From positions 124,001-188,000 of the IMG/VR virus record IMGVR_UViG_3300042350_002797: a DNA stretch of 64,000 nt; one strand, given 5' to 3'. Position 1 is the stretch's first letter, and the number at the start of each line of letters is the position of its first letter. This document shows, in pieces, positions 5,914 through 52,830 of this stretch. The position numbers and the translations under genes were made by a program. A model generated the notes under the pieces. That model did not search any database. It saw nothing but the letters and a program-made list of their open reading frames with translations, and was not told the DNA's origin.

Positions 5914-6261
5914 ATGACTAATAATTTTGAAGCTGCATTTGATTTGGCTAATCTTATGTCAGCAATATCGACTCAAAAAAAAATACTAAAAGAAGAATTT
6001 GAATTATCTACATTATATTTTTGTAATGGTGGAACTTTTAAAATTGATCAACAGCTAATCTCTTTTGTTACATCGTTAAAAATATTGCATCAAACAACCG
6101 CAGTAATTATTGATCAAAATAATTTACCAATTTTTATTGATAACGTTTCTATATTTTTAGAAAATATTTTACATCAATATACATTTGCTTCTAATAAATT
6201 TTTAACAGATTATAAACTGCTTCAAAATACTAGAAAAACAGAAAGTATTTTAGATTTATGA
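5914..6261 (+). CDS. Hypothetical protein (possible tail-fibre assembly chaperone)
   Basis: 115 aa with GGAGG SD, directly after the fibre genes; NGGTFKID and IIDQNNLPI segments. Confidence 0.45.
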   Translation: MTNNFEAAFDLANLMSAISTQKKILKEEFELSTLYFCNGGTFKIDQQLISFVTSLKILHQTTAVIIDQNNLPIFIDNVSIFLENILHQYTFASNKFLTDYKLLQNTRKTESILDL

Positions 6262-7085
6262 ACAGAGGGGTAATTCTATTTGCTTTTCAGTCAACAGTTG
6301 ATTATGTCTCGTTGGCAATTTTTTCTGCTGAACGTATAAAAAAACATTTAAAATTACCTGTTTCTTTAGTAACAGATTCTAAAAGTTATTTAGAAAATTT
6401 AGATAAAACTGAAATATTCGATGAAATTATAGAGATAGAAGATTCCACAATTCAAAAGAAAGTATTTAATAACGGCACTGCTGAATTTCAGAATATCATT
6501 TGGAAAAATTCCAATAGATCATTAGCGTATGATTTAACACCATATGAACATACTATTGTATTAGATGTAGATTACATAATTAATTCAGATTTTTTATTAA
6601 AATGCCTAGATATAAACAAAGATTTTCTAATTTTTAAAGATTCATGCGATTTATCATTTTGGAGAAATTCAAAAGAATTTACTTATGTATCAGAGTTTTC
6701 TATTCCTTTTTATTGGGCTACTGTTTTAATTTTTAAGAAATCTGAAAAAAATAAAACTTTTTTTCAACTAGTTAAAGAAATTAAAAATAATTGGAATTAT
6801 TATAGATCTTTATATCAAATTCCAGATTCAAAATTTAGAAATGACTTTGCATTTAGTATAGCTATACATATTACTTCTGGATTTGTTTCTAATAATTTTA
6901 ATAATATAATTCCTTCAAAAATTTATTATACTCTTGATAAAGATTATTTGTATAATATAACAGATAATTCTTGTTCGTTTTTAATTGAAAAACAAAATTC
7001 AGGAGGTCAGTATATACCTACTAAGGTCAATAATGTTGATGTTCATGTAATGAATAAATTCAGTCTTATTGAAAGTATTATATGA
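6258..7085 (+). CDS. GT-A fold nucleotide-diphospho-sugar transferase (GT8-like)
   Basis: YDLTPYEHTIVLDVDY (DxD motif), FYWATV, FRND.AF, HVMNK. Confidence 0.7.
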   Translation: MNRGVILFAFQSTVDYVSLAIFSAERIKKHLKLPVSLVTDSKSYLENLDKTEIFDEIIEIEDSTIQKKVFNNGTAEFQNIIWKNSNRSLAYDLTPYEHTIVLDVDYIINSDFLLKCLDINKDFLIFKDSCDLSFWRNSKEFTYVSEFSIPFYWATVLIFKKSEKNKTFFQLVKEIKNNWNYYRSLYQIPDSKFRNDFAFSIAIHITSGFVSNNFNNIIPSKIYYTLDKDYLYNITDNSCSFLIEKQNSGGQYIPTKVNNVDVHVMNKFSLIESII

Positions 7086-7903
7086 AAGGTCATTTAATTT
7101 TTGCACAAAATTCAGATGTTGATTATGTTAAACAAGCATATGCTCTTGCTTTGACTATTAAAAAAAATAATTCTATTAATAATGTAGCCATAGTAACAAA
7201 TAATTTGATACCAAAAAAATATAAACATGTATTTGATTACATTATAGAAATACCATGGGACGATGATGCTAAAGATTCTCATTGGAAAATTGAAAATCGT
7301 TGGAAACTAATACATACTTCTCCTTTTGATGAAACAATGGTTTATGATTCAGATATGTTGTTATTAACTTCTAATGATGACTGGTGGGATATTTTAGAAA
7401 AACACGATGTATTTTTAACTTCAGAAGTTTTAGATTATCGTAATAATATAATCAAAGATACTAAACTTCGAAAGGTGTTTACAGAAAATAGTTTACCAAA
7501 TGTTTATTTTGGATTTCATTATTTTAAAAAAACTAAGAGAGCATATGAATTTTACAAATGGTTAGAAGTAATTGTAAAAAATTATAAAGTTTTTTATAAA
7601 AAATTTACACCAATTTCTAATCAAAATTTTTGTAGCATGGATGTTAATGTTGCAATAGCTACTAAAATATTAGATGCAGTCGAAGAATTTACCTTGCCAA
7701 ATAGTCCTATAAAATTTGTACATATGAAAAAAGAACTACAAAACTGGCAAGAAATACCTGCTTCATGGTCTTCGTGTCTATTGATAAATTTTACTAAAAA
7801 TTTTAAATTTTATCTATCTAATAATTTACAAAATGGATTGTTTCATTACACAGAAGATGAATTTTTAACAGAAGAAATAATAGGAATAATTGAGAATGAA
7901 TAA
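7082..7903 (+). CDS. GT-A fold glycosyltransferase-like, paralog of the upstream gene
   Basis: SPFDETMVYDSDML (DxD motif), LPNVY.GFHYFKK, FVHMK. Confidence 0.7.
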   Translation: MKGHLIFAQNSDVDYVKQAYALALTIKKNNSINNVAIVTNNLIPKKYKHVFDYIIEIPWDDDAKDSHWKIENRWKLIHTSPFDETMVYDSDMLLLTSNDDWWDILEKHDVFLTSEVLDYRNNIIKDTKLRKVFTENSLPNVYFGFHYFKKTKRAYEFYKWLEVIVKNYKVFYKKFTPISNQNFCSMDVNVAIATKILDAVEEFTLPNSPIKFVHMKKELQNWQEIPASWSSCLLINFTKNFKFYLSNNLQNGLFHYTEDEFLTEEIIGIIENE

Positions 7904-8435
7904 TCTAGTTTATGTAATATACGATGATGAAATGAATCTTTTACAAATTACTTCTATATTACCAGAAACAAACAATTATTTTCAAATTGAACAATCGAAA
8001 GTAAAAGATTTTTATCTTGGATTTAAAAGTTATCCAGGGCATTATGTAAAAAATCATGGATTTAATAAATTTACAATAGAAGAAAAAGTTAACACCGCTG
8101 GCATATATAGATATAATGATTTAATTGATCTAACTGTACAAAAAGATAGTGCAGATTTAATGATAAAATACAATATTGAAACGTTTACTTGGAAGTTTAT
8201 GTTAGATACAGATGTGGCAAATTTAATAGAAACGAATCATTATGATAAGCTATTAGAATTTTATTTGGTAAAACGTGATCAACATAATTTTCTAGTTAGA
8301 ACTTTTGTAATTAAACTTGCAGATTTGATAAATGACACACTTGAATTCCGGTTCGAAACTGAATATGAACACTTTTTTGAAAATTTATTAATAAAAAGCA
8401 AACAACATTTTGATAAAATTGGAATATATGTATGA
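7896..8435 (+). CDS. Hypothetical protein
   Basis: ORF overlapping both neighbours; ATG at 7896 preferred over TTG 7890. Confidence 0.55.
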   Translation: MNNLVYVIYDDEMNLLQITSILPETNNYFQIEQSKVKDFYLGFKSYPGHYVKNHGFNKFTIEEKVNTAGIYRYNDLIDLTVQKDSADLMIKYNIETFTWKFMLDTDVANLIETNHYDKLLEFYLVKRDQHNFLVRTFVIKLADLINDTLEFRFETEYEHFFENLLIKSKQHFDKIGIYV

Positions 8436-42336: not shown

Positions 42337-45000
42337 TTACATTTCGAAAAGACTATTAAATGTATTCTTTTCTTCGGTACTTCTGATGTTCCAATTTAAA
42401 ACACCAATAAGATTTTCTAATTTTTTATCGATGATAGTTGCCTCCATTTCTCCATGATCGAATGGCAAATCTTTAAACCATTGCGGCAAACGTAATTCAT
42501 CAACCGGGTATGCTACACTAGAATACTCTAAAGGGTTATCTTTTAATTTACACACAATAACTTTAGCTCCGTCTGTAATATTCATACTGTATTTGTCATC
42601 GAACATACGTTTTAATGTGTTCCAATTAATGCTAGCACGAACATGTCCTGGCATATTGGCCTTTCCTTGCCTTTCTTCTTTATTTTGATATTCCGTGATA
42701 TTATTTGCACGTTTGGGAGAACCTTTCTCCCAGCCAGGGCGAGCCTTAAATGCGATTCTAAATTCACTAATAAAATCTAAAACTTCTCTTTCAGAAGATC
42801 CAGTTAATACCATTTCTAACACATCACTTAAGAAGTCTTGAATAAATTCTGGAGTATCGCTGCGTTTTAGATCTAACCCCATGGCCTTAATTTTACCAGG
42901 CTTACCGTCTACGTCTACTCGTTTGCCTTCTTTATCATAATAAAGAACAGCATAACGTTTTTTTGTAATAAACAATGCTTTAGATCCGACAATTTCTCTT
43001 CCTGCCTTTATAACTTCTCCTCTACTAGTAGGACAATGAAATACATCTTGCATAAATTTAGGAAAAGTTTTATTAACTTCTTCTCCAATTTGATCATACA
43101 ATGACGTTATGGTTTCTTTTGACCACGGAATTTTTCCAGCGTCGATATCCTTTTTAAGCGTCTTATAAGCAGAAAAATAACAACTATCAGTATCGCCGTA
43201 GATAATAGCTTTTCCAACATGATTATATTCTCCTGTTATAATTTCATTTACTTTACTGGCCATGTGTTTGGCAATTTGTCTACCAACTAGTGTAGTACTT
43301 TGTCCAATTCGTTTATCAAAGAATCTGCAACCAGGATTAAGAATAGCACCATACAAACTGTTCAAGTTAATTTTTTTAACTAGTTGTCGTTTATCCCAAT
43401 ACTCTTCTTCGATCTTATTTCCGTTAGAAATACATTCTTTTAGTTTTGCCTGCATTTCTTTACGTTCCGCATACCATCGTTTTAATAATCCAGGTATAAT
43501 ACCTTCTTTTTCATATGTAAAGATTGTACCATTACTGCTTAACATAAATGGCTGATTACTTTCGAATATTAATTTATAAACTTCAGCAGCACTTAAAATG
43601 TCATGAGTATCATCTTCCCAGTCAATAACAACCTCTGTTCCTATTTCTTTATTCATTACAGCTTCATATTCGAGAGAACCAAATTTTCCCTCCCAACTAG
43701 CTGCGAAGCTTTTTCCTTTGGCCATTAAATTTTGTATGTATTCTTCGGTCATAGTTTGACGTAATTGTCCAACAATAGTTTCTGGCCCCATATTAAGCGC
43801 ACGAATAGCACTCGGGTATAGACTGTTAATATCCAGACTTCCTACCCAATCTTGTAATCCTTCTTTAGGATAAGCAACATATGCACCGGCAGCAGCAGTG
43901 TCTTCACGTTCACTCATCTTTGTTCTATTAGGAACTTGAAATCCTCTTCGATGTGCTTCATTGATAATAGCTTGCTCTGTAACAGCTACCGCACCCATAG
44001 TTGTTTGTAGAAGTACAGTATTTTCATGAGCCAGTTTGTTACTTAAATCTAAGAATTTTAATTTTTTATCTAACTTATCAAGCAGCGCACAGTCTTGTCT
44101 ATTGTATCGTATAAATTCTTTGAAGTCATTGTTATACAATTGATCTAACGTACCTTCGTACGGGACTTTTCTTTCACCAAGTTCATATTCCGCGATGGCA
44201 TCCAATCTATAGGAATGTCTTTCTTCGTAAGTATATTTGCGGTATAGTTCGAGGTAGTCAAGGTGTACCCGTCCAACCAAGTCATAGGTTTGTGCTGTTT
44301 TTCCGTAACGTTCATATTCTCTCTTTCTAGGATGTAGATTCCATAGACAAAATCTTCGTGTGTCGTCTTTGCTTAGGGTTTTAGTTACTCGATTCACGGT
44401 ATATGGAATATCGAATCCTTCACTATTCCAGCCACTTAATATATCTGCATCTTGTATTAAATTAAGAAAAGTATCTAACATATCTGCTTCGTTATCAAAC
44501 AAATGAGTGTTAGGAAATTCTTCAACAAGCTTTTTAGCATCTTCCATACTGACACCCTTTGGAGGAATAGCCAAACAAACCATAGTTTCTAGCCATTGAA
44601 GATATACTGCTATAGCAGTAATCGGCATAAAAGCATCGTCGGGGCTTGCATAACCTCTTTCAGGATCGAAGTCTACTTCAATATCGAAAAATGCTGCATT
44701 TAGCTTAGGAGCGTCTTGTCCTAAGTAATGCTCGCTTAGAGATACAAATATAGGGTTAATATCTGCTTCGTACAGAGTTTGATTACTATGTATTTTTAGT
44801 TCTTTGTGAAAATCTTTGCTAGTTTTGCAAACGATTCTACTTAGGGGATCCCCATAGATGCTGGTAAATTTACCTCGAGCATCCGGGTAATAAAAAGTGT
44901 ATTTTACTGGATATTCTTTGAAAACTCTTTTACCATGTTCATTGCGTTCAACAATATGTATGATATCAGAGTCGCGGTTAAAGTATGCGTCTACGTACAT
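42337..45000 (-). CDS. Family B DNA polymerase (T4 gp43-like)
   Basis: Exonuclease motifs FFDIE, GWNS..FD, YN..D; polymerase motifs DINSLYPS, K..LNSLYG, YGDTDS, KKRY. No intein seen. Confidence 0.97.
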   Translation of the reverse strand: MYVDAYFNRDSDIIHIVERNEHGKRVFKEYPVKYTFYYPDARGKFTSIYGDPLSRIVCKTSKDFHKELKIHSNQTLYEADINPIFVSLSEHYLGQDAPKLNAAFFDIEVDFDPERGYASPDDAFMPITAIAVYLQWLETMVCLAIPPKGVSMEDAKKLVEEFPNTHLFDNEADMLDTFLNLIQDADILSGWNSEGFDIPYTVNRVTKTLSKDDTRRFCLWNLHPRKREYERYGKTAQTYDLVGRVHLDYLELYRKYTYEERHSYRLDAIAEYELGERKVPYEGTLDQLYNNDFKEFIRYNRQDCALLDKLDKKLKFLDLSNKLAHENTVLLQTTMGAVAVTEQAIINEAHRRGFQVPNRTKMSEREDTAAAGAYVAYPKEGLQDWVGSLDINSLYPSAIRALNMGPETIVGQLRQTMTEEYIQNLMAKGKSFAASWEGKFGSLEYEAVMNKEIGTEVVIDWEDDTHDILSAAEVYKLIFESNQPFMLSSNGTIFTYEKEGIIPGLLKRWYAERKEMQAKLKECISNGNKIEEEYWDKRQLVKKINLNSLYGAILNPGCRFFDKRIGQSTTLVGRQIAKHMASKVNEIITGEYNHVGKAIIYGDTDSCYFSAYKTLKKDIDAGKIPWSKETITSLYDQIGEEVNKTFPKFMQDVFHCPTSRGEVIKAGREIVGSKALFITKKRYAVLYYDKEGKRVDVDGKPGKIKAMGLDLKRSDTPEFIQDFLSDVLEMVLTGSSEREVLDFISEFRIAFKARPGWEKGSPKRANNITEYQNKEERQGKANMPGHVRASINWNTLKRMFDDKYSMNITDGAKVIVCKLKDNPLEYSSVAYPVDELRLPQWFKDLPFDHGEMEATIIDKKLENLIGVLNWNIRSTEEKNTFNSLFEM

Positions 45001-45214: not shown

Positions 45215-45495
45215 AACATTCTTACTAGACCTACAATATCAATGGTAACTAACAACATATAATTTGCTAACATCCCAAACGACCTGCGAGTCCAAGCTGC
45301 CCAAGCGTACATAGAACAACCGCTAATCCAAATAGGATAAAGAATAAGCAACGGCGGATTAGGGACGGTTGCTGCCATAGCGATACTACAACCAATACTA
45401 AGGACCCAAGCAAACAACTCGACAGTAAAACGTATACGATTAGATCGCCAATCATCTTTTATCCATTGAAATATGTTATAAACAATATCGTTCAT
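45211..45495 (-). CDS. Small multi-pass membrane protein
   Basis: Three hydrophobic segments in 94 aa. Confidence 0.7.
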   Translation of the reverse strand: MNDIVYNIFQWIKDDWRSNRIRFTVELFAWVLSIGCSIAMAATVPNPPLLILYPIWISGCSMYAWAAWTRRSFGMLANYMLLVTIDIVGLVRML

Positions 45496-45758
45496 TAGTC
45501 TTGAGGCAAGTTTTTAGTAACTCCTAGGATAGTTTCGATCTCATCCCATTCTTCTTCGTGTACCTTCCAGTTATCTTTATGAGCAATTTTGATTGCTTTG
45601 TTGATAATACTAGGTTTAACATTTAATTCTTCTGCAACTGCTTTAACGGTTTCTTTAAGACCTTCTTGTAAATCTTCGATTTCCCTTAAAACGGTTGATC
45701 CTTCATTAATCAATCGTTCTAGTTTAGATTTTTCTTCGGGTCCATACATTCTACTCAT
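45495..45758 (-). CDS. Small dsDNA-binding protein (T4 DsbA/GapR-like)
   Basis: Helical L.E+EDL.EGLKE.VK..AEEL..KP..+NKAIK+AHK; first gene after a consensus promoter. Confidence 0.6.
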   Translation of the reverse strand: MSRMYGPEEKSKLERLINEGSTVLREIEDLQEGLKETVKAVAEELNVKPSIINKAIKIAHKDNWKVHEEEWDEIETILGVTKNLPQD

Positions 45759-45780: not shown

Positions 45781-45809
45781 ATTATAAGTTAGTAAATTTA
45801 TAATGTCAA
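45781..45809 (-). promoter_or_regulatory. Consensus sigma70 promoter for the replication operon
   Basis: TTGACA-17 nt-TATAAT. Confidence 0.85.
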
Positions 45810-46236: not shown

Positions 46237-46260
46237 AAAAGCCCCTTGCGGGGCTTTTTT
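46235..46260. terminator. Bidirectional intrinsic terminator
   Basis: AAAAAAGCCCC-TTGC-GGGGCTTTTTT between convergent genes. Confidence 0.92.
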
Positions 46261-47098
46261 ATTGAATAGATTTTATATCTACCCCTTTTTGTTTAAGAAG
46301 TATAAGAGCTTGAGCCATTTCTCCACCTGAAAGATCTCCCTTCAGGCCTTGCATTAATGTTTCGCCTGTGTATTCTTGATATTGTTTAGATACACTTTGA
46401 TACTGTTTAGCATCTTTGATTGATTGTAAGACTTTAAATACTGCTTTATTATCTGTTCCGATTCCTTCTATGGCATTTTTTAATTGCCATGCGAGGGACT
46501 TATCTGTTTTCCAAAGTGCAGGTTCTGTCTTAGTTGCATTTGGATCTGTCTTGGTTGCATTTGGATCTGCCATAGGTGCTTGTCCGGATACAGGAAATCC
46601 GTGTTTTTTAGCAATATCTGGATATTTCTTCATAGCTTGTCTAGTTTTGCTATTTGGACCTCCAAGATTTCCGTCAATGCCGTCTTTGTTGGAACCATAA
46701 GTGCCTAAGTCTGCACCTGCTGCTTTTAGATCTTTCTGCATTTTCATAACTGCAAATTGATTTCCAGCGAGAGGTTTATCTCCACCTGTTTTGGTTTTTT
46801 CTCCAGGCATAGGCTGTCTTGGTACTTCCGGCATGCCTGGTTTATCAGATCCGGGAGTAACTGTTGAAGTAGAGTATTTGCTAATTTCATTACTAACACT
46901 GTTGTAACGATCTATTTCTCTATTTAGATCTTGAATGTTTGGGTAATTTGTATATCTTGAATCTTTGCCGAGGTCTTTAAGTTTCAAATATAATGTATTA
47001 AGTTCTGTTTGCTCAGCTGATGAAATTACTTCATATACTGGAGCGTCTATTCGATTTTCAATTTCTGACAATTTTGTCATTAAGTCTTTAATATTCAT
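46259..47098 (-). CDS. Putative internal virion protein: peptidoglycan-binding domain + annexin-like repeat
   Basis: VMKMQKDL..AG.DLG..G...DGIDG.LG...T..AM (PG_binding_1-like); LAWQLKNAIEGIGTD..AVF.VL...Q...+...Y...TG..L...LKGDLSG (annexin-like). Confidence 0.7.
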   Translation of the reverse strand: MNIKDLMTKLSEIENRIDAPVYEVISSAEQTELNTLYLKLKDLGKDSRYTNYPNIQDLNREIDRYNSVSNEISKYSTSTVTPGSDKPGMPEVPRQPMPGEKTKTGGDKPLAGNQFAVMKMQKDLKAAGADLGTYGSNKDGIDGNLGGPNSKTRQAMKKYPDIAKKHGFPVSGQAPMADPNATKTDPNATKTEPALWKTDKSLAWQLKNAIEGIGTDNKAVFKVLQSIKDAKQYQSVSKQYQEYTGETLMQGLKGDLSGGEMAQALILLKQKGVDIKSIQ

Positions 47099-47113: not shown

Positions 47114-48193
47114 TTATTTTCTTGCTGTTCCAGCATATTTCATAATCATAGCTGCATCGTCTGTGCCATAAGGATCAGTATATTCTGGTTCAGGCTCAGA
47201 CTTCTTAGGGTCTGGAACTATTTTTTGATCAGGCACTATTCGTTTTTTAGGATCAGGCTGAGGATTTTGACCACTTGGTTCCTTCATTAATGACTTATCT
47301 AACAGCTCTTTAAATCTAGCCACTGCTGTTTTAAGTTCCTCGGGAGTCATTAACGGATCCTCGCCTGCTGGCTGCTCTGCTTGCCCAGTTGGCTTTTCTG
47401 GCTCTGCTGGTTTTTCAGGAGTAGGTGCTGGAGTTGCTTCTGCACCTTTTTGTAATGCCATATAACGATCTACTAGAGTTTTGACATCAGGGCGTTGATC
47501 TTTCATCGGTCCTAGCTTGCTCATTACATCTGTAAGTTGCTTTTGTTCTTCAGGGCTTAAATCTTTTAATGCTTCAAAAACATAACCAAAAGATTCTACT
47601 AGTTTTCTAGAAATACTTTCGATAGTTACTGGTGCTGCATTTTTACCTTCTGCTTTGTCTAATAGTTTTATTGCAGTAGCAATGTCTTTAGCTAATTCGT
47701 CTTGCTCTTTCTTTCCTGGAGGAAGGTTTATACCTATATCTGTATTTTGACCTTGTGTAGGTTCAGGTTCTGGACTCTTTTGATCGACACCAGTGTAATT
47801 ACTGGTTTTCTTCTGGTCATCAGTTGGTAATGTATCCATTGTACCAGGTTCTTGTTTTTCTTGATTAAAAGTTTTCCATGTGACACCTTCTGGATAATCA
47901 ACAGGCTTGCCATTAACAAACTCTCCGTCGATACTAGTAGGATTAACAGCAGATCTGTCTTCAGGATCAAATTTAGCAAAGTTCCATTTAGCAATTTCTT
48001 GTCTACCTTGATTAGGATACTGCCCTTGTTTCATATGATAGAAATTTCCATCGCTGTGTAACATTAAGGATGTTCTTCCACCGAAGTTATTTTTATGAAA
48101 ATGTGTAGGTTTAAATTCTGTAGGTGCTGCTTCAGATAGTGTCGCACCACTTTCAATTTCTTGTAATTTTGTAATTAAGGATTGTAAGTCCAT
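47114..48193 (-). CDS. Putative internal virion protein, modular and P/E/K-rich
   Basis: N-terminus MDLQSLITKLQEIE parallels the neighbour's MNIKDLMTKLSEIE; LSE|A and VFE|A candidate cleavage sites. Confidence 0.6.
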   Translation of the reverse strand: MDLQSLITKLQEIESGATLSEAAPTEFKPTHFHKNNFGGRTSLMLHSDGNFYHMKQGQYPNQGRQEIAKWNFAKFDPEDRSAVNPTSIDGEFVNGKPVDYPEGVTWKTFNQEKQEPGTMDTLPTDDQKKTSNYTGVDQKSPEPEPTQGQNTDIGINLPPGKKEQDELAKDIATAIKLLDKAEGKNAAPVTIESISRKLVESFGYVFEALKDLSPEEQKQLTDVMSKLGPMKDQRPDVKTLVDRYMALQKGAEATPAPTPEKPAEPEKPTGQAEQPAGEDPLMTPEELKTAVARFKELLDKSLMKEPSGQNPQPDPKKRIVPDQKIVPDPKKSEPEPEYTDPYGTDDAAMIMKYAGTARK

Positions 48194-48215
48194 ATTTCTT
48201 TCCTATTATTATTCT

Positions 48216-48296
48216 TGCTCACTTTTAAGTTACACGGTAGCGAATCGTTTCACTAAGGCAGCAGCCGCCTACGCACCATAGCGGTCCTAAGGTGTG
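48216..48296 (-). ncRNA. Candidate structured RNA (unknown class)
   Basis: 42/81 GC in an AT-rich intergenic gap; three stem-loops, a GAA/GUA E-loop-type internal loop, and a possible pseudoknot. Confidence 0.55.
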
Positions 48297-49061
48297 TTAT
48301 TTTGGAACACAGTTTGGAACTGTGCGTCCGTTCTTTTGTTTTGTTCCTACAGGCTTGTAACCTTTCCAACATGGATTATCTTTCGGATCTCTAAGACCTT
48401 CTTCAACTTCTTTACATCTACAGCCTTTTACATGGTCTCCAGGAATAGGACTTTTACTATCATTTGGAGGCGCTGTGTAATATTCTTCTAATTGTGATAT
48501 CTGTTCGTCTAGTTGATTTTTTAGTTGTCTAATATTGTCTAAAATATCTTCTACTTGTACAACAGGTTTACCTTGAGTATTTGAAGCTCTGCCTGTGCGG
48601 CTAGCTTTCATTTTATCTCCACTACCGCCAATGTGTTTACTAGCTAAACTTAGTCCTGCCTTACGAGGGCCTTTACTTGCTTTGCCCTGTTTAACTTCGC
48701 CACCTTTGGATAGATAATCTTTTACTGCGGAATCTACGTCAGCAGTTTTTTCGTTAATTTTTCTAGAGATTCTTTCTGCTAGTTGTTTGGCACGGTCTTT
48801 ATATCTTTCTTCTGATTCGGATATTTCGTCTTCTATTTTTTTAAAGTATTTTCCGATCATGCTTGGTTTAGCGTCTTTTTCTTTATTAAGAACCGGATTA
48901 GTAATATCTTTTTGATAGTGTTGAACAGCCATTAATTCTGCTGTACTTAGTCTGTTGTTTGATTCATTAACAATAGACAAAAACTTCTCCATATCTTTAG
49001 AAGAAGTTTTGTTAGGTGCCGACGCTCCATCTACAGCAGCTAAGAATTTTTTCATATCCAT
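48297..49061 (-). CDS. Putative internal virion polyprotein
   Basis: Modules separated by VNE|S, INE|K, VEE|G; C-terminal PCWKGYK.VG.K.K.G+.VPNCVP module. Confidence 0.6.
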   Translation of the reverse strand: MDMKKFLAAVDGASAPNKTSSKDMEKFLSIVNESNNRLSTAELMAVQHYQKDITNPVLNKEKDAKPSMIGKYFKKIEDEISESEERYKDRAKQLAERISRKINEKTADVDSAVKDYLSKGGEVKQGKASKGPRKAGLSLASKHIGGSGDKMKASRTGRASNTQGKPVVQVEDILDNIRQLKNQLDEQISQLEEYYTAPPNDSKSPIPGDHVKGCRCKEVEEGLRDPKDNPCWKGYKPVGTKQKNGRTVPNCVPK

Positions 49062-50374: not shown

Positions 50375-51010
50375 TTAGCCCTCAAATGCATCTAATGCAT
50401 CATTCCAATGTTTAATACGATCTTCCATGCCAATCGTGCCACCGTTGATTCTTTTACTTAATAAGACAATGTCACCTTTGTCGCAAATTGCATTTAGTTG
50501 ATTCTTATACCAGAACCAGCAAGCACTAAGGGTCGCATATTCTGGAGTTCTTAGTAAGTCCGGATCATTTGCTAATGTATCGTCGCCGAATAAATCTCGA
50601 CTGCATTTAGTATAATTGTCACGTCCAGTTAATTGTAGAATACCTCTACCGCGGAATTTCCAACCATCTCCGCTAGATTCAGGCCCATTGCCCATACGAC
50701 TACTATAGATTTTGTTAGCGATCTTTTCAGGTTTACGCTCATAGGCTTTTGCTGTAGCATCGTCCGGAAAGTATTTTCCAAATAATCCACGAAGCCCTTT
50801 AGCTCCGTAGTTTAAATTTTCTTGTAGTGCAGTAAAATCGGCACTTTCGTGTTGACATTGTGCAATAAATCCTGCTACTCTAGCAGGTGTAGTAATCATA
50901 AATTTTGGTAAGTACATATTAAACGCATTATACCAAAGCTCTAATTCTTTGTTTTTATGTACTACTTTTTTAAGATTGTTTAATGTAAAATCAAATTCAA
51001 ATCCACTCAT
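50375..51010 (-). CDS. Glycoside hydrolase family 19 endolysin
   Basis: R.A.F+AQC.HES, ENLNY, GDGWKFRGRG..QLTGR.NY, SACWFW, RINGG..G..DR. Confidence 0.93.
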   Translation of the reverse strand: MSGFEFDFTLNNLKKVVHKNKELELWYNAFNMYLPKFMITTPARVAGFIAQCQHESADFTALQENLNYGAKGLRGLFGKYFPDDATAKAYERKPEKIANKIYSSRMGNGPESSGDGWKFRGRGILQLTGRDNYTKCSRDLFGDDTLANDPDLLRTPEYATLSACWFWYKNQLNAICDKGDIVLLSKRINGGTIGMEDRIKHWNDALDAFEG

Positions 51011-52830
51011 TTGCTACTCCTTTTTTTACCTTGCCTCATATTTATTTGCCAATGGGCTAATTGTTTTTTACGAGGACTTGCTGTGTCACTGCTTCTAATT
51101 TTTTTTAGTGTTGAGATACTGGATTTTTTTGGAATCCCGTGTCTTGCACTATCGCCTTTATCTTGAGGATTTTTACCATCTGCAAAATTTTCATCAATAT
51201 CGTGTGTATCTAATCCTAGTTGTTTAAGATATTTGATATATTCGTGTTCCAGAGGTTCACTGCCAAATGATAATACAGTTTGAGGAGGTCCTTGACCGAA
51301 ATCGTGTTTACCTAACCCTTTTAAATTACTAATATGCTGACCTAATTTATACCAGTCATATGTGTCACTAACATCTACTTTTACAGTGCCTTTAGGCCAT
51401 GGAATTAAATCTCCTTCTTTAATAGGAGTATTCATAGTTTTTAGGTAATTTTGAAATATTCCGTGACGTTTTTGTAAACCAGCTAGTCCAGGATTAATAT
51501 ACCTAGTTACAGTTCTTGTATCAGTAAAGTTTTTAACATTAGGCTGGACTCTATTTTTCCAGAACCACACACTGGCTTTGGCAGCGATTTCTGGTTTTTC
51601 TAATAATTCGGGTTTGTTATCCAAAGGAAGACCTAGTGCTTGACCGGCTTGAGTATAATTCCATCGACCTGTTAATTGAATAAACCCGCGACCTTTAAAT
51701 CTTTGTCCGTCTCCAGACATAGTATTACCTAACTCTTTGGCCTTATCAGGACTAAATTGTTTATCGTATTTTTTTAAAAATTCGTCAGATGTACCAAATT
51801 CTACAAGTGTTGCATAATTTGCTGTTTCGTGTGCGCACTGTGCTAAAAATTGTGCAAGCTCTTTGCCTTTGATGCCTGCCTTTAAAGCAAAATTTCTTAG
51901 CGTAGATTCTAAAGGATTGCCAGTTATTGGAGCAGGTTGAGCTGCCTGACCTGATATTTTTTTGTCTACAGAAGTAGGTTGTTTTTTCTTTTGTATATTA
52001 GAAATTAAATCACCAATTGGGTCGCCTTTAACATTACCATATGAATCTAATTTTTCTTTAATAGATTCAGCTTCTCCGCCACCATCTCCGCTGTATCCAC
52101 TGTCGTATCCATAACCACCGTAAGGTCCAGGACCCCATGCTCCATAACCGCCATAAGTATTTCTACTAAAAAGTGAATTTTGTTTTCGTTGACGAGATTT
52201 TTTCTTTCTACGGCTTTCGCTTACTACAGCAACACTACCAGAAGATTTTACAAAATATGCATCAAAATCTACATTAGGGTATTCTTGTTCTAAACTTTTG
52301 AATACTTTTAAATTTGTCATCGAATCATCAATAAGATTCACTCTGTTATACTTGCCGGTATTTAGATACTTTCTTACCCATACGGCTTTTTTATAAGCCG
52401 GCGGTTCGTCACCAGGTAAATTGCCTGCACGATGAACATGTATACGACTCATATCAATACCATACTTTTCAAACGTACTTAAAAATTTATCTTTATCATC
52501 AAAGTCGGCACGAGCAGTTAACATAATTACTTTGGTATTAGCTGCCCGGTCTAGGATACGTTTTAATGTGTTGATCATTGGTTTAATTGGTTCGCTTTCT
52601 TTAGCAAACTTTTCAGCACTACGAAACTCGCCGAAGTCAAATTCTTCACCAGGTTGTAATTCGTAATTATTAAATTCTTGATTAGTTAAACTACGTACTA
52701 CTTTACCGTCTTTGATTACTTTAATCTGAGCAGTAGTATGAAATAATGTATCATCAATGTCGAAGATTGTTAAGCCCATATTACCCTTAGGCATTTCTTG
52801 TCGTTCGGTAATAATATCTAATATTTTCAT
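51007..52830 (-). CDS. Multidomain protein: HAD-family phosphatase + GH19 lysozyme + small modules
   Basis: FDIDDTL, LTAR, IDD (HAD); AQFLAQCAHET, GDG.RFKGRG.IQLTGR.NY (GH19); domain borders at VSE|S, IKE|K, IKE|G, IDE|N. Confidence 0.85.
   Translation of the reverse strand: MKILDIITERQEMPKGNMGLTIFDIDDTLFHTTAQIKVIKDGKVVRSLTNQEFNNYELQPGEEFDFGEFRSAEKFAKESEPIKPMINTLKRILDRAANTKVIMLTARADFDDKDKFLSTFEKYGIDMSRIHVHRAGNLPGDEPPAYKKAVWVRKYLNTGKYNRVNLIDDSMTNLKVFKSLEQEYPNVDFDAYFVKSSGSVAVVSESRRKKKSRQRKQNSLFSRNTYGGYGAWGPGPYGGYGYDSGYSGDGGGEAESIKEKLDSYGNVKGDPIGDLISNIQKKKQPTSVDKKISGQAAQPAPITGNPLESTLRNFALKAGIKGKELAQFLAQCAHETANYATLVEFGTSDEFLKKYDKQFSPDKAKELGNTMSGDGQRFKGRGFIQLTGRWNYTQAGQALGLPLDNKPELLEKPEIAAKASVWFWKNRVQPNVKNFTDTRTVTRYINPGLAGLQKRHGIFQNYLKTMNTPIKEGDLIPWPKGTVKVDVSDTYDWYKLGQHISNLKGLGKHDFGQGPPQTVLSFGSEPLEHEYIKYLKQLGLDTHDIDENFADGKNPQDKGDSARHGIPKKSSISTLKKIRSSDTASPRKKQLAHWQINMRQGKKRSSK

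Follow-up and report, generated by a model that had tools for sequence, protein, structure and literature searches.

A new phage RNA family whose conserved 5' half is antisense to helix 69 of 23S ribosomal RNA

Comparison of the element across phage contigs

Does the short intergenic stretch between two phage genes encode a structured RNA, and if so, what might that RNA do? We examined positions 48216-48296 (minus strand) in a 64-kb window, i.e., the whole 64,000-nt stretch of a phage genome that was analysed. The first-pass annotation had proposed a novel structured RNA here, and its observation was confirmed: the minus strand reads exactly as described. The stretch is 81 nt long with 42 G+C (51.9%), in a genome of about 35-38% GC. 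It starts right after the TAA stop codon (48299-48297) of the upstream ORF (48297-49061, minus strand, 254 aa, function unknown) and ends 22 nt before the ATG at 48193 of the downstream ORF (47114-48193, minus strand, 359 aa, function unknown). The stems CACC/GGUG, AGGC/GCCU and AGU..ACG[loop]CGU..ACU are all present. However, the single sequence does not fold better than shuffles, with an MFE of -23.4 kcal/mol against -20.6 +/- 2.9 (z -0.97), and the plus strand gives z -0.61.

We therefore turned to comparison with relatives. More than 300 IMG/VR phage contigs carry the same element, one copy each. An exact three-block pattern had 1 match in the window against 0 in 100 shuffles and at least 120 matches in IMG/VR; each of three different patterns gave at least 120 hits there. 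A covariance model found one hit per contig in 100 of 100 and 97 of 100 sources in two scans. In the window, the model gave a single hit at 48213-48302 (minus strand; 63.5 bits, E 1.3e-14), delimiting the whole element with its 5' lead, the helices P1, P2 and P3, a remnant of the optional hairpin P1a and a pseudoknot tail. A regular-expression search found no other copy in the 364,554-bp genome. The element is 94-98% identical in nucleotides where the flanking protein is only 54-70% identical in amino acids.

Conservation and covariation in relatives, which had been set beforehand as the test of the candidate, supported it strongly. In an alignment without the pseudoknot, 89.9% of cells are paired against 62.8% in shuffles, 512 cells have changes on both sides against 163, and the covariation score is 0.494 against 0.132, a value reached by 0 of 500 shuffles; slid-partner controls gave 0.03-0.07. 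In a second alignment with the pseudoknot included, 90.7% of cells are paired against 66.6%, and 26 of 28 pairs are compensatory. RNAalifold on the raw MAFFT alignment missed the helices because of misalignment. The strand was assigned from G-U and A-C counts: consensus pairs have 84 G-U against 32 A-C, the outer layer of P2 has 8 G-U and 0 A-C, and one pseudoknot pair is G-U in 66 of 96 sequences. A count of MFE mismatches using Watson-Crick pairs only gave 16 against 14, and a permissive hairpin DP overfitted and was discarded, so we relied on the consensus-pair counts.

The element matched no known family in the databases searched. None of the 4227 Rfam 15 models had a hit at gathering threshold in the 64-kb window; at E up to 10 in 47900-48600 there were only chance snoRNA and lncRNA hits of 12-19 bits, and six diverse members gave no hits at E up to 0.1. 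ARAGORN found no tRNA or tmRNA gene in the window, and P1 closes only the first domain, so there is no acceptor-like closing helix. BLAST of the region and of the best-scoring member against 50,697 GenBank phages gave no match, and the nearest cultured relatives by DNA polymerase (Phosso, Atu_ph07 and 121Q; 45-49% amino acid identity) lack the motif. A scan of genome contigs gave 4 hits, of which two are chance matches inside ORFs and two are real but sit on MAG contigs that are probably binned phage. The Bacteroidota labels of the latter conflict with the strong Shine-Dalgarno usage of this genome, so no host was inferred from them. Literature searches found nothing relevant.

Fold and genomic context

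The fold consists of P1, P2 and P3 plus a pseudoknot between the P2 loop and the 3' tail. The P1 5' strand (ACACACC, 48291-48297) pairs with the 3' strand (GGUGCGU, 48271-48277); the register is slightly ambiguous in this sub-lineage, and A48295 faces C48273. Across the family, 5 of 5 P1 pairs have changes on both sides and 89-92% of cells are paired. P1 encloses a conserved CCUUAGGACC loop and the optional hairpin P1a. The P2 hairpin (48256-48270) has the stem AGGC (48270-48267) with GCCU (48259-48256) around the loop GGCUGCU (48266-48260). Its stem layers swap GC and CG (73/55 and 83/44), and the helix is 98-99% paired. The P3 hairpin (48228-48254) has AGU/ACU and ACG/CGU stems around a GAA/GUA internal loop, with the terminal loop AUUCGCUAC (48245-48237). 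All 8 modelled P3 pairs covary, and all four pair types are common. The 3' tail AGUGAGC (48217-48223) forms the 3' strand of the pseudoknot with G48265-U48260 of the P2 loop, with G48220 bulged. In this helix 92.9% of cells are paired and 4 of 6 pairs have changes on both sides.

The interpretation in the first-pass annotation was only partly supported. Its core claim, a novel structured RNA on the minus strand matching no known tRNA, riboswitch or ribozyme, is strongly supported, but several details do not hold. It had paired the tail with the P3 loop UUCGCU, whereas the tail covaries with the P2 loop GCUGCU, as shown by radical compensatory variants such as UCUCCCUG/CAGGGAGA and GCCCCCA/UGGGGG; for the radical variants, cognate loop/tail duplexes beat 61-65 non-cognate ones. 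The proposed GAA/GUA E-loop occurs only in the window's own sub-lineage, and elsewhere the internal loop is CGG/AA, UU/U, GGA/AAA and so on. The suggestion of alternative folds from CGCUA in two loops rests on P1a, which is variable or absent in relatives. Placement in a virion-cargo operon has no support, because the flanking proteins are of unknown function and the conserved neighbourhood is a DsbA-like gene plus DNA polymerase.

The DsbA-like gene (45495-45758, minus strand, 87 aa; phrog_12534 at 1.7e-21 and phrog_639 at 1.6e-13) is the conserved downstream neighbour of the RNA in 116 of 161 loci. A family-B (T4 gp43-like) DNA polymerase (42337-45000, minus strand; phrog_262 at 2e-201) ends the conserved module in 101 of 161 loci. 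A perfect sigma-70 consensus promoter (TTGACA-17-TATAAT) of the DsbA-like gene lies at 45781-45809 (minus strand). In many relatives the equivalent promoter lies immediately 3' of the RNA, and in about 40 loci it lies, together with a Shine-Dalgarno site, between the RNA and the DsbA-like ATG. In this commonest arrangement the RNA is therefore not the leader of the next gene but the terminal part of a transcription unit or a stand-alone RNA. In the window, the 359-aa ORF follows after 22 nt with no promoter between, and together with ORF 46259-47098 it sits between the RNA and the DsbA-like gene's promoter. No terminator-like site was found on the minus strand at the element, where the tail after P3 is AAAAGUGAGCAAGAAU, although a separate canonical terminator follows the element in one relative. 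A neighbourhood search for a partner protein found only the DsbA-like gene, a 94-aa ORF and DNA polymerase as recurrent neighbours; one large protein cluster was a single-linkage artefact, and an NTase-like family is rare.

Complementarity to 23S rRNA helix 69

An unexpected property emerged when the element was compared with the E. coli rrnH operon. The conserved unpaired loop CCUUAGGACCG inside P1 (48282-48292) is a perfect 11/11 complement of E. coli 23S rRNA 1920-1930. The 19-nt stretch ACCUUAGGACCGCUAUGGU (48275-48293), which includes the reduced P1a hairpin ACC/GGU, is complementary at 17 of 19 positions to 23S 1913-1931, and relatives reach 22/24 and 25/27. In addition, UUCGCUACC (48236-48244), in and next to the P3 loop, is a 9-nt perfect complement of 23S 1929-1937, abutting the target of the 5' loop. 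This P3 loop class, class A, makes up 66% of a set not selected on P3. The rare class D loop is a 9-mer complement of 1968-1976, the other strand of H70. Classes B and C, about a third of members, showed no significant match against E. coli or Bacteroidota 23S.

In 20,000 shuffles of the conserved blocks, a complement of 11 nt or more arose 56 times, and two blocks of 9 nt or more within 60 nt arose 3 times (p about 3e-3 to 1e-4). The best antisense hit to the whole rrn operon falls at 23S 1900-1937 in 175 of 194 elements, with a mean score of 27.6 against 19.8 for shuffled and 20.4 for the sense orientation. The footprint over these elements is 0.85-0.98 at 1920-1930 and 0.44-0.80 at 1909-1919, with a median of 22 matched nucleotides. 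P1a loop positions stay 44-80% complementary to H69, while the P2 and P3 stems are fully randomised. The complementary segments are exposed in the covariation-supported structure, the 5' loop in the P1-enclosed junction and the class A segment in the P3 terminal loop, but P1a is itself a hairpin and only its loop is free. The rRNA comparison was made post hoc, and two further matches were rejected: the P2 loop against the 16S 530 loop (519-527, 9/9) is a coincidence, because in variants the loop changes completely together with the tail, and the tail against 23S 1099-1105 (7 nt) is likewise explained by the pseudoknot. The target is invariant in 35 of 35 sampled Bacteroidota 23S genes, a sample in which tracking of the host target by the loop cannot appear. 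Among variants of the 5' loop, GGAAC, GGUCC and CCCUAGG break pairing at its edges in about 18 sequences, against about 10 that preserve a wobble pair, and all variants also fit a CC-NNN-GG mini-hairpin or a protein site.

Possible function and relation to known RNAs

We conclude that the element is one member of a previously undescribed family of structured small RNAs encoded by uncultured jumbo phages, about 80-115 nt long and present once per genome, and the existence of this family is nearly certain. The analysis establishes the fold, the strand (that of the genes), the usual start at the stop codon of the preceding gene, the position before the promoter of the DsbA-like/DNA polymerase module in the commonest arrangement, and the antisense relation of the 5' domain to helix 69 and its 3' flank (nt 1909-1931), continued by the P3 loop to nt 1929-1937 in most members. 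By contrast, any accumulation as a discrete RNA, pairing with 23S or 50S, and function are inferred from sequence alone. Our favoured but tentative reading is that the RNA acts in trans as an antisense RNA against the host large-subunit rRNA. In this view, the unpaired CCUUAGGA would nucleate on the linker 1923-1930, the P1a hairpin would kiss the complementary H69 loop, and the covarying P2-pseudoknot-P3 core would serve as a scaffold or a protein handle. Because nt 1920-1924 are paired within H69 in mature ribosomes, the target would have to be a free, immature or unfolded subunit, such as free 50S or nascent or immature 23S. Pairing would block or mark bridge B2a (subunit joining, recycling, hibernation) or guide a phage factor to that site. 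However, a phage needs working ribosomes, so a simple inhibition of the 50S is not obviously beneficial. Assembled metatranscriptome contigs, which show neither ends nor interactions, show only that the flanking genes, and a relative's element joined to both flanks, occur in RNA libraries.

If the family is real, which the covariation makes nearly certain, it adds a widespread, phage-specific, pseudoknotted RNA class that no database holds, found in hundreds of freshwater phage contigs, including genomes of 300-380 kb. In its boldest form, which is possible but rather less than even, the reading is that uncultured jumbo phages encode a dedicated small RNA that base-pairs with helix 69, which forms intersubunit bridge B2a and touches the decoding centre, and thereby sequesters, marks or reprograms host large subunits or guides a phage enzyme to them. 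This would be the first viral, and the first bacterial-world, trans-acting anti-rRNA guide or antisense RNA. If the complementarity is functional, it would open a new chapter in how viruses handle the host ribosome, a story that so far rests on proteins (phage-encoded ribosomal proteins, modification of translation factors) rather than on RNA-RNA pairing with rRNA. It would also give a natural, evolution-optimised antisense design against a universal target sequence that is among the most conserved and drug-relevant sites of the bacterial ribosome.

The strongest rival, which we consider somewhat less likely than the antisense reading, is a structured RNA whose conserved loops serve tertiary folding or binding of a phage or host protein, as a 3'-UTR stabiliser or processing module or an RNP component. 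The likeness to antisense 23S would then be a relic of a captured, inverted rDNA fragment, or convergent, with no present pairing to rRNA. The absence of any rRNA relation in the P2-pseudoknot-P3 core, the lack of 23S complementarity in P3 loop classes B and C, the retention of CC-NNN-GG in all 5' loop variants, the position at the 3' end of a transcription unit and the coincidental P2/16S match favour this view. However, a relic would have drifted, yet 11 nt stay 85-98% complementary and another 10 stay 44-80% complementary across phages whose P2 and P3 stems are completely randomised. Moreover, two separate loops tile a contiguous 23S stretch, and no conserved candidate partner protein lies nearby apart from the DsbA-like gene and DNA polymerase.

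A cis-acting translational element, analogous to the calicivirus TURBS, that tethers terminating ribosomes, or the 50S subunit, for re-initiation on the next ORF is improbable. The element begins at or within about 15 nt of the upstream stop codon in roughly 60% of loci, an ORF often follows within 3-70 nt, in the window the next ORF follows after 22 nt with no promoter, and there is complementarity to rRNA. However, the next gene commonly has its own promoter and Shine-Dalgarno site downstream of the RNA, one relative has an intrinsic terminator right after the element, the downstream genes are unrelated to one another, and the complementarity is to 23S rather than to 16S, which stays on the mRNA after termination. 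A new self-cleaving ribozyme or riboswitch-like RNA is slightly less likely still. The compact pseudoknotted fold with invariant unpaired nucleotides, the location between phage genes and the defined start after a stop codon would suit it, and small ribozymes are common in phages, but no Rfam ribozyme or riboswitch model hits even at E 0.1-10, there is no expression platform, the promoter lies downstream, and neither idea explains the 20-29 nt of rRNA complementarity. A DNA-level signal (replication origin, recombination, packaging or protein-binding site), suggested by the single copy beside the DsbA-like gene and DNA polymerase in a region where gene cassettes come and go, is very unlikely, because compensatory changes in five helices and a pseudoknot with a G-U excess on one strand are the signature of a single-stranded fold.

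Several known systems resemble the element in part. Classical stem-loop antisense RNAs (CopA/CopT of plasmid R1, RNA I/RNA II of ColE1, Sok/hok) are small, untranslated and carried by a mobile genome, and have a hairpin fully complementary to a target hairpin next to an unpaired stretch that can nucleate pairing, as P1a faces H69 and CCUUAGGA faces the 1923-1930 linker here. However, they are transcribed from the opposite strand of their own target gene, whereas this RNA is encoded in trans by a virus, is complementary to universally conserved host rRNA, and carries an extra pseudoknotted core, its pairing being only inferred. Guide snoRNAs/sRNAs of eukaryotes and archaea (C/D and H/ACA) and U3 also combine 10-20 nt of complementarity to functionally central, conserved rRNA segments with a protein-binding scaffold, and the H69 region is a natural modification hotspot. 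Direct reading of the 81-nt sequence, however, found no C (RUGAUGA) or D (CUGA) box, no ACA box and no pseudouridylation pocket, the architecture differs, and bacteria and their phages are not known to use guide RNAs for rRNA. Orphan phage and metagenome motifs in Rfam were likewise found by conservation and covariation in intergenic DNA and have no known function, but the element matches none of the Rfam models, and no such motif with extended antisense complementarity to rRNA is known to us. TURBS of caliciviruses, which pairs with 18S rRNA, and other mRNA elements that pair with rRNA (Shine-Dalgarno, T7 epsilon enhancer) share the complementarity of a viral RNA segment to ribosomal RNA at a stop/start junction, but they pair with small-subunit rRNA and act in cis on the next ORF, whereas here the complement is to 23S and the next gene usually has its own promoter. 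Finally, PeSL cassettes (promoter-early stem-loop) of T4-type phages occupy a similar context, a hyperplastic region of a T4-related genome next to a sigma-70-type early promoter with accessory gene cassettes inserted around it. PeSLs are simple stem-loops that are repeated many times per genome and follow the promoter, whereas this element is single copy, has several helices and a pseudoknot, and precedes the promoter.

Conservation and covariation of the RNA element

The minus strand of positions 48216-48296 reads exactly as described in the first-pass annotation, and that observation therefore held. The stretch has 81 nt and 51.9% G+C, in a genome of about 35-38% GC (with a local GC trough of 0.237 at window positions 6001-8000, against about 0.35 elsewhere). 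It begins right after the TAA stop codon (48299-48297) of a 254-aa ORF and ends 22 nt before the ATG (48193) of a 359-aa ORF. Taken alone, the sequence is unremarkable. Its MFE is -23.4 kcal/mol against -20.6 +/- 2.9 for dinucleotide shuffles (z -0.97), and the opposite strand gives z -0.61. A search of the whole window against Rfam 15 at gathering thresholds gave no hits, and a search around the site at E values up to 10 gave only chance snoRNA and lncRNA noise. ARAGORN found no tRNA or tmRNA.

However, relatives of the upstream protein in IMG/VR carry the same intergenic sequence, which is 94-98% identical in nucleotides where the protein is only 54-70% identical in amino acids. A strict three-block pattern taken from these copies occurs once in the window, against 0 in 100 shuffles, and has at least 120 matches in IMG/VR. 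Two further patterns, each leaving a different block free, also gave at least 120 matches each, and more than 300 loci were collected in all. A covariance model (R1) found one copy per contig, with 100 hits in 100 sources over 0.94 Mb and 97 in 100 over 0.97 Mb. The window lies in a complete 364,554-bp virus record, which holds a single copy. No GenBank phage has the motif, nor do the closest cultured relatives by DNA polymerase (Sinorhizobium phage Phosso, Agrobacterium phage Atu_ph07 and Escherichia phage 121Q, with 45-49% aa identity). Among one genome for each of 185,579 prokaryote species, only two MAG contigs carry it, and two other pattern hits are chance matches inside ORFs. Six diverse members also failed to hit any Rfam model.

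The structure was examined on a model-based alignment of 100 sequences (A3). In this alignment, 89.9% of cells form standard pairs against 62.8% in column shuffles, and 512 cells carry changes on both sides against 163. The covariation score is 0.494, a value reached by 0 of 500 shuffles, against 0.132 in the shuffles, whereas sliding the 3' partners by 1-3 columns gives 0.03-0.07. Compensatory change is seen in 20 of 22 pairs. Helix P1 encloses a conserved unpaired CCUUAGGACC loop and an optional hairpin, P1a. P2 has a 4-5 bp stem, whose layers swap G-C and C-G freely, and a 7-nt loop. P3 is a long hairpin with a variable internal loop, and its terminal loop comes in four classes: A (..UCGCUACC, 66%), B (GAGUCGUGCC, 24%), C (GCCGGGAAUCC, 3%) and D (ACGCCA.., 7%).

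A set of loci collected without constraining the P2 loop or the 3' tail revealed that these two covary. The loop/tail pairs seen include GGCUGCU with AGUGAGC, GGGUGCU with AGUGACC, GGCCACU with GUGUGGC, GGCUACU with GUAGC, and GACUGCU with GUGAGU, as well as the wholly different UCUCCCUG/CAGGGAGA, GCCCCCA/UGGGGG, CCUACA/UGUAGG, GAACCC/GGGUUC and GCCCCAU/AUGGGGC. Cognate loop/tail duplexes of the radical variants beat essentially all 61-65 non-cognate ones. With the pseudoknot written in, a second alignment (A4) gives 90.7% paired against 66.6%, and 26 of 28 pairs are compensatory. The pseudoknot helix is 92.9% paired, with 4 of 6 pairs changed on both sides. Thus, the 3' AGUGAGC pairs with the P2 loop, and not with the P3 loop as had been proposed in the first-pass annotation. 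The GAA/GUA "E-loop" proposed there exists only in the sub-lineage of the window. One relative (locus L007, 3936-4060) carries a degenerate element with the P2 loop GGCUUCU, the tail AAAAGAGCA and a weakened pseudoknot, which is followed at once by a canonical intrinsic terminator.

Strand and genomic setting

At the consensus pairs, G-U outnumbers A-C by 84 to 32, and the outer layer of P2 has 8 G-U and no A-C. One pseudoknot pair is G-U in 66 of 96 sequences, which would be A-C on the other strand, and the flanking ORFs run the same way. The RNA is therefore read from the gene strand, which is the minus strand of the window.

The element sits in a variable region upstream of a conserved module consisting of a DsbA-like 86-aa gene (116 of 161 loci), a 94-aa ORF and a family-B DNA polymerase (101 of 161 loci). 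No other protein family is a consistent neighbor. In loci L084-L355 of our collection, the DNA on both sides of the RNA is a hotspot of gene turnover, in which ferritin/Dps-like, fatty-acid-desaturase-like, staphylococcal-nuclease-like and many unknown ORFs come and go between conserved anchors. In about 60% of loci, the stop codon of the preceding, unrelated gene lies at or within the 5' lead (..UAAGAACAC..). The last ~35 aa of the window's upstream ORF 48297-49061 (minus strand; window 48297-48401; DPKDNPCWKGYKPVGTKxKNGxTVPNCVPK) recur at 81-94% identity at the C-termini of otherwise unrelated proteins in at least 80 IMG/VR contigs. In some relatives, a further 45-aa tail (..GQLKAKGKVDVKGTVLGSPEKSQKGLRNKLVGGGT) follows it and then abuts the RNA. 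This looks like a widely shared basic C-terminal module of unknown role.

Where the RNA directly precedes the DsbA-like gene, a canonical TTGACA-17-TATAAT promoter and a Shine-Dalgarno site lie between the 3' end of the RNA and the ATG. Therefore, the RNA is not the leader of that gene, and it ends a transcription unit or stands alone. In the window, two extra ORFs (359 aa and 279 aa) lie between the RNA and the DsbA-like gene (45495-45758), which is preceded by a perfect 12/12 sigma-70 consensus promoter at 45809-45781 on the minus strand. Equivalent promoters follow the RNA in about 40 relatives, so these phages appear to rely on host sigma-70 for this module. The 279-aa ORF (46259-47098, minus strand) has an Annexin repeat hit above the Pfam cutoff (32.7 bits against 25; E 7.8e-08), which is unusual for a phage. 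Elsewhere in the window, a 607-aa ORF (51007-52830, minus strand) combines a polynucleotide-kinase-like N-terminus (phrog_415) with a lysozyme/endolysin-like domain (phrog_181, 1.6e-39), and is followed by a second, separate lysozyme-like ORF (50375-51010, minus strand; 1.5e-74).

The genome uses Shine-Dalgarno sites strongly and has 28 tRNA genes (genome positions 244208-251964 and 350196-362186, outside the window). One of these, at 350196-350271, has the anticodon CUA, is labelled "Pyl" by ARAGORN and could be an amber suppressor. Lake metatranscriptome contigs cover both flanking genes, and in one run a 229-nt contig from a relative spans the end of the upstream ORF, the element and the start of the downstream ORF. 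This is compatible with co-transcription but does not prove it, and it says nothing about the RNA ends.

Complementarity to 23S rRNA helix 69

Because the conserved loops resembled the reverse complement of universally conserved rRNA, we compared them with the E. coli rrnH operon. CCUUAGGACCG is a perfect 11/11 complement of 23S 1920-1930. The class A P3 loop holds a 9-nt perfect complement of the abutting 1929-1937, and the class D loop holds a 9-nt complement of 1968-1976, whereas classes B and C have no significant 23S match. In 20,000 shuffles of the four conserved blocks, a complement of 11 nt or more arose 56 times, and two blocks of 9 nt or more within 60 nt arose 3 times. Local alignment of each of 194 distinct elements against the antisense of 16S, 23S and 5S rRNA placed the best hit at 23S 1900-1937 in 175 cases, with a mean score of 27.6 against 19.8 for shuffled sequences and 20.4 for the sense orientation. 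The best examples match 22/24 and 25/27, and the window matches 17/19 (48293-48275 against 1913-1931). The per-nucleotide footprint is 0.85-0.98 for 1920-1930 and 0.44-0.80 for 1909-1919, with a median of 22 matched nucleotides.

In other words, P1a is the antisense image of the helix 69 stem-loop, and the unpaired loop before it is the antisense of the linker that follows H69. P1a loop positions stay this similar although the P2 and P3 stems have been completely randomized by covariation, so sequence-specific selection must be acting on them. Members whose P3 loop lacks GCUAC more often carry CUACC in the 5' domain (18 of 34 against 14 of 66, Fisher p 0.003, not corrected for relatedness), although 17 of 100 have neither. 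The 23S target is invariant in the 35 Bacteroidota genomes sampled. A third apparent match, of the P2 loop to 16S 519-527 (9/9), is a coincidence, because the pseudoknot variants show that this loop is free to change as long as the tail follows.

Interpretation and comparison with known RNAs

The central claim of the first-pass annotation, a novel structured RNA on the minus strand, is confirmed and considerably strengthened, but its interpretation was only partly supported, because several structural details and the "virion-cargo" label did not hold. Our analysis establishes a new, widespread, phage-specific RNA family with a pseudoknotted three-helix fold, which is single copy, is read from the gene strand, and is not a 5' leader where it directly precedes the DsbA-like gene. 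It likewise establishes 20-29 nt of conserved antisense complementarity to 23S H69 and its 3' flank, exposed in a junction loop, a hairpin loop and, in most members, the P3 loop. That the RNA acts in trans on host 23S rRNA is, by contrast, an inference from sequence, as is its reading as a classical antisense layout, with a hairpin complementary to a target hairpin plus an unpaired nucleation stretch. In this view, the target would be the part of the 50S subunit that forms bridge B2a and contacts the decoding site. Its 3' strand is paired in mature subunits, so free, immature or nascent 23S is the plausible substrate. The phage might thereby sequester or mark subunits, block joining, recycling or hibernation, or guide a phage factor through the conserved P2-pseudoknot-P3 core. 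We favor this reading only tentatively, as it is the likeliest of those considered but not more likely than not. The helix 69 complementarity is nevertheless a concrete hypothesis that is cheap to test, because E. coli ribosomes carry the identical target.

The strongest alternative, which we consider possible but less likely, is a protein-binding or structural RNA whose likeness to rRNA is a relic. A cis-acting re-initiation or tethering element is improbable, and a ribozyme or riboswitch is slightly more so. A DNA-level site is very unlikely.

Nothing known fits the element as a family, and literature searches revealed no precedent for an RNA encoded in trans by a virus and directed at bacterial rRNA. 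In its proposed mode of action, it would work most like a stem-loop antisense RNA, and conceptually like an rRNA guide RNA. However, it lacks the C/D and H/ACA hallmarks, is encoded in trans by a virus, and would target bacterial rRNA.
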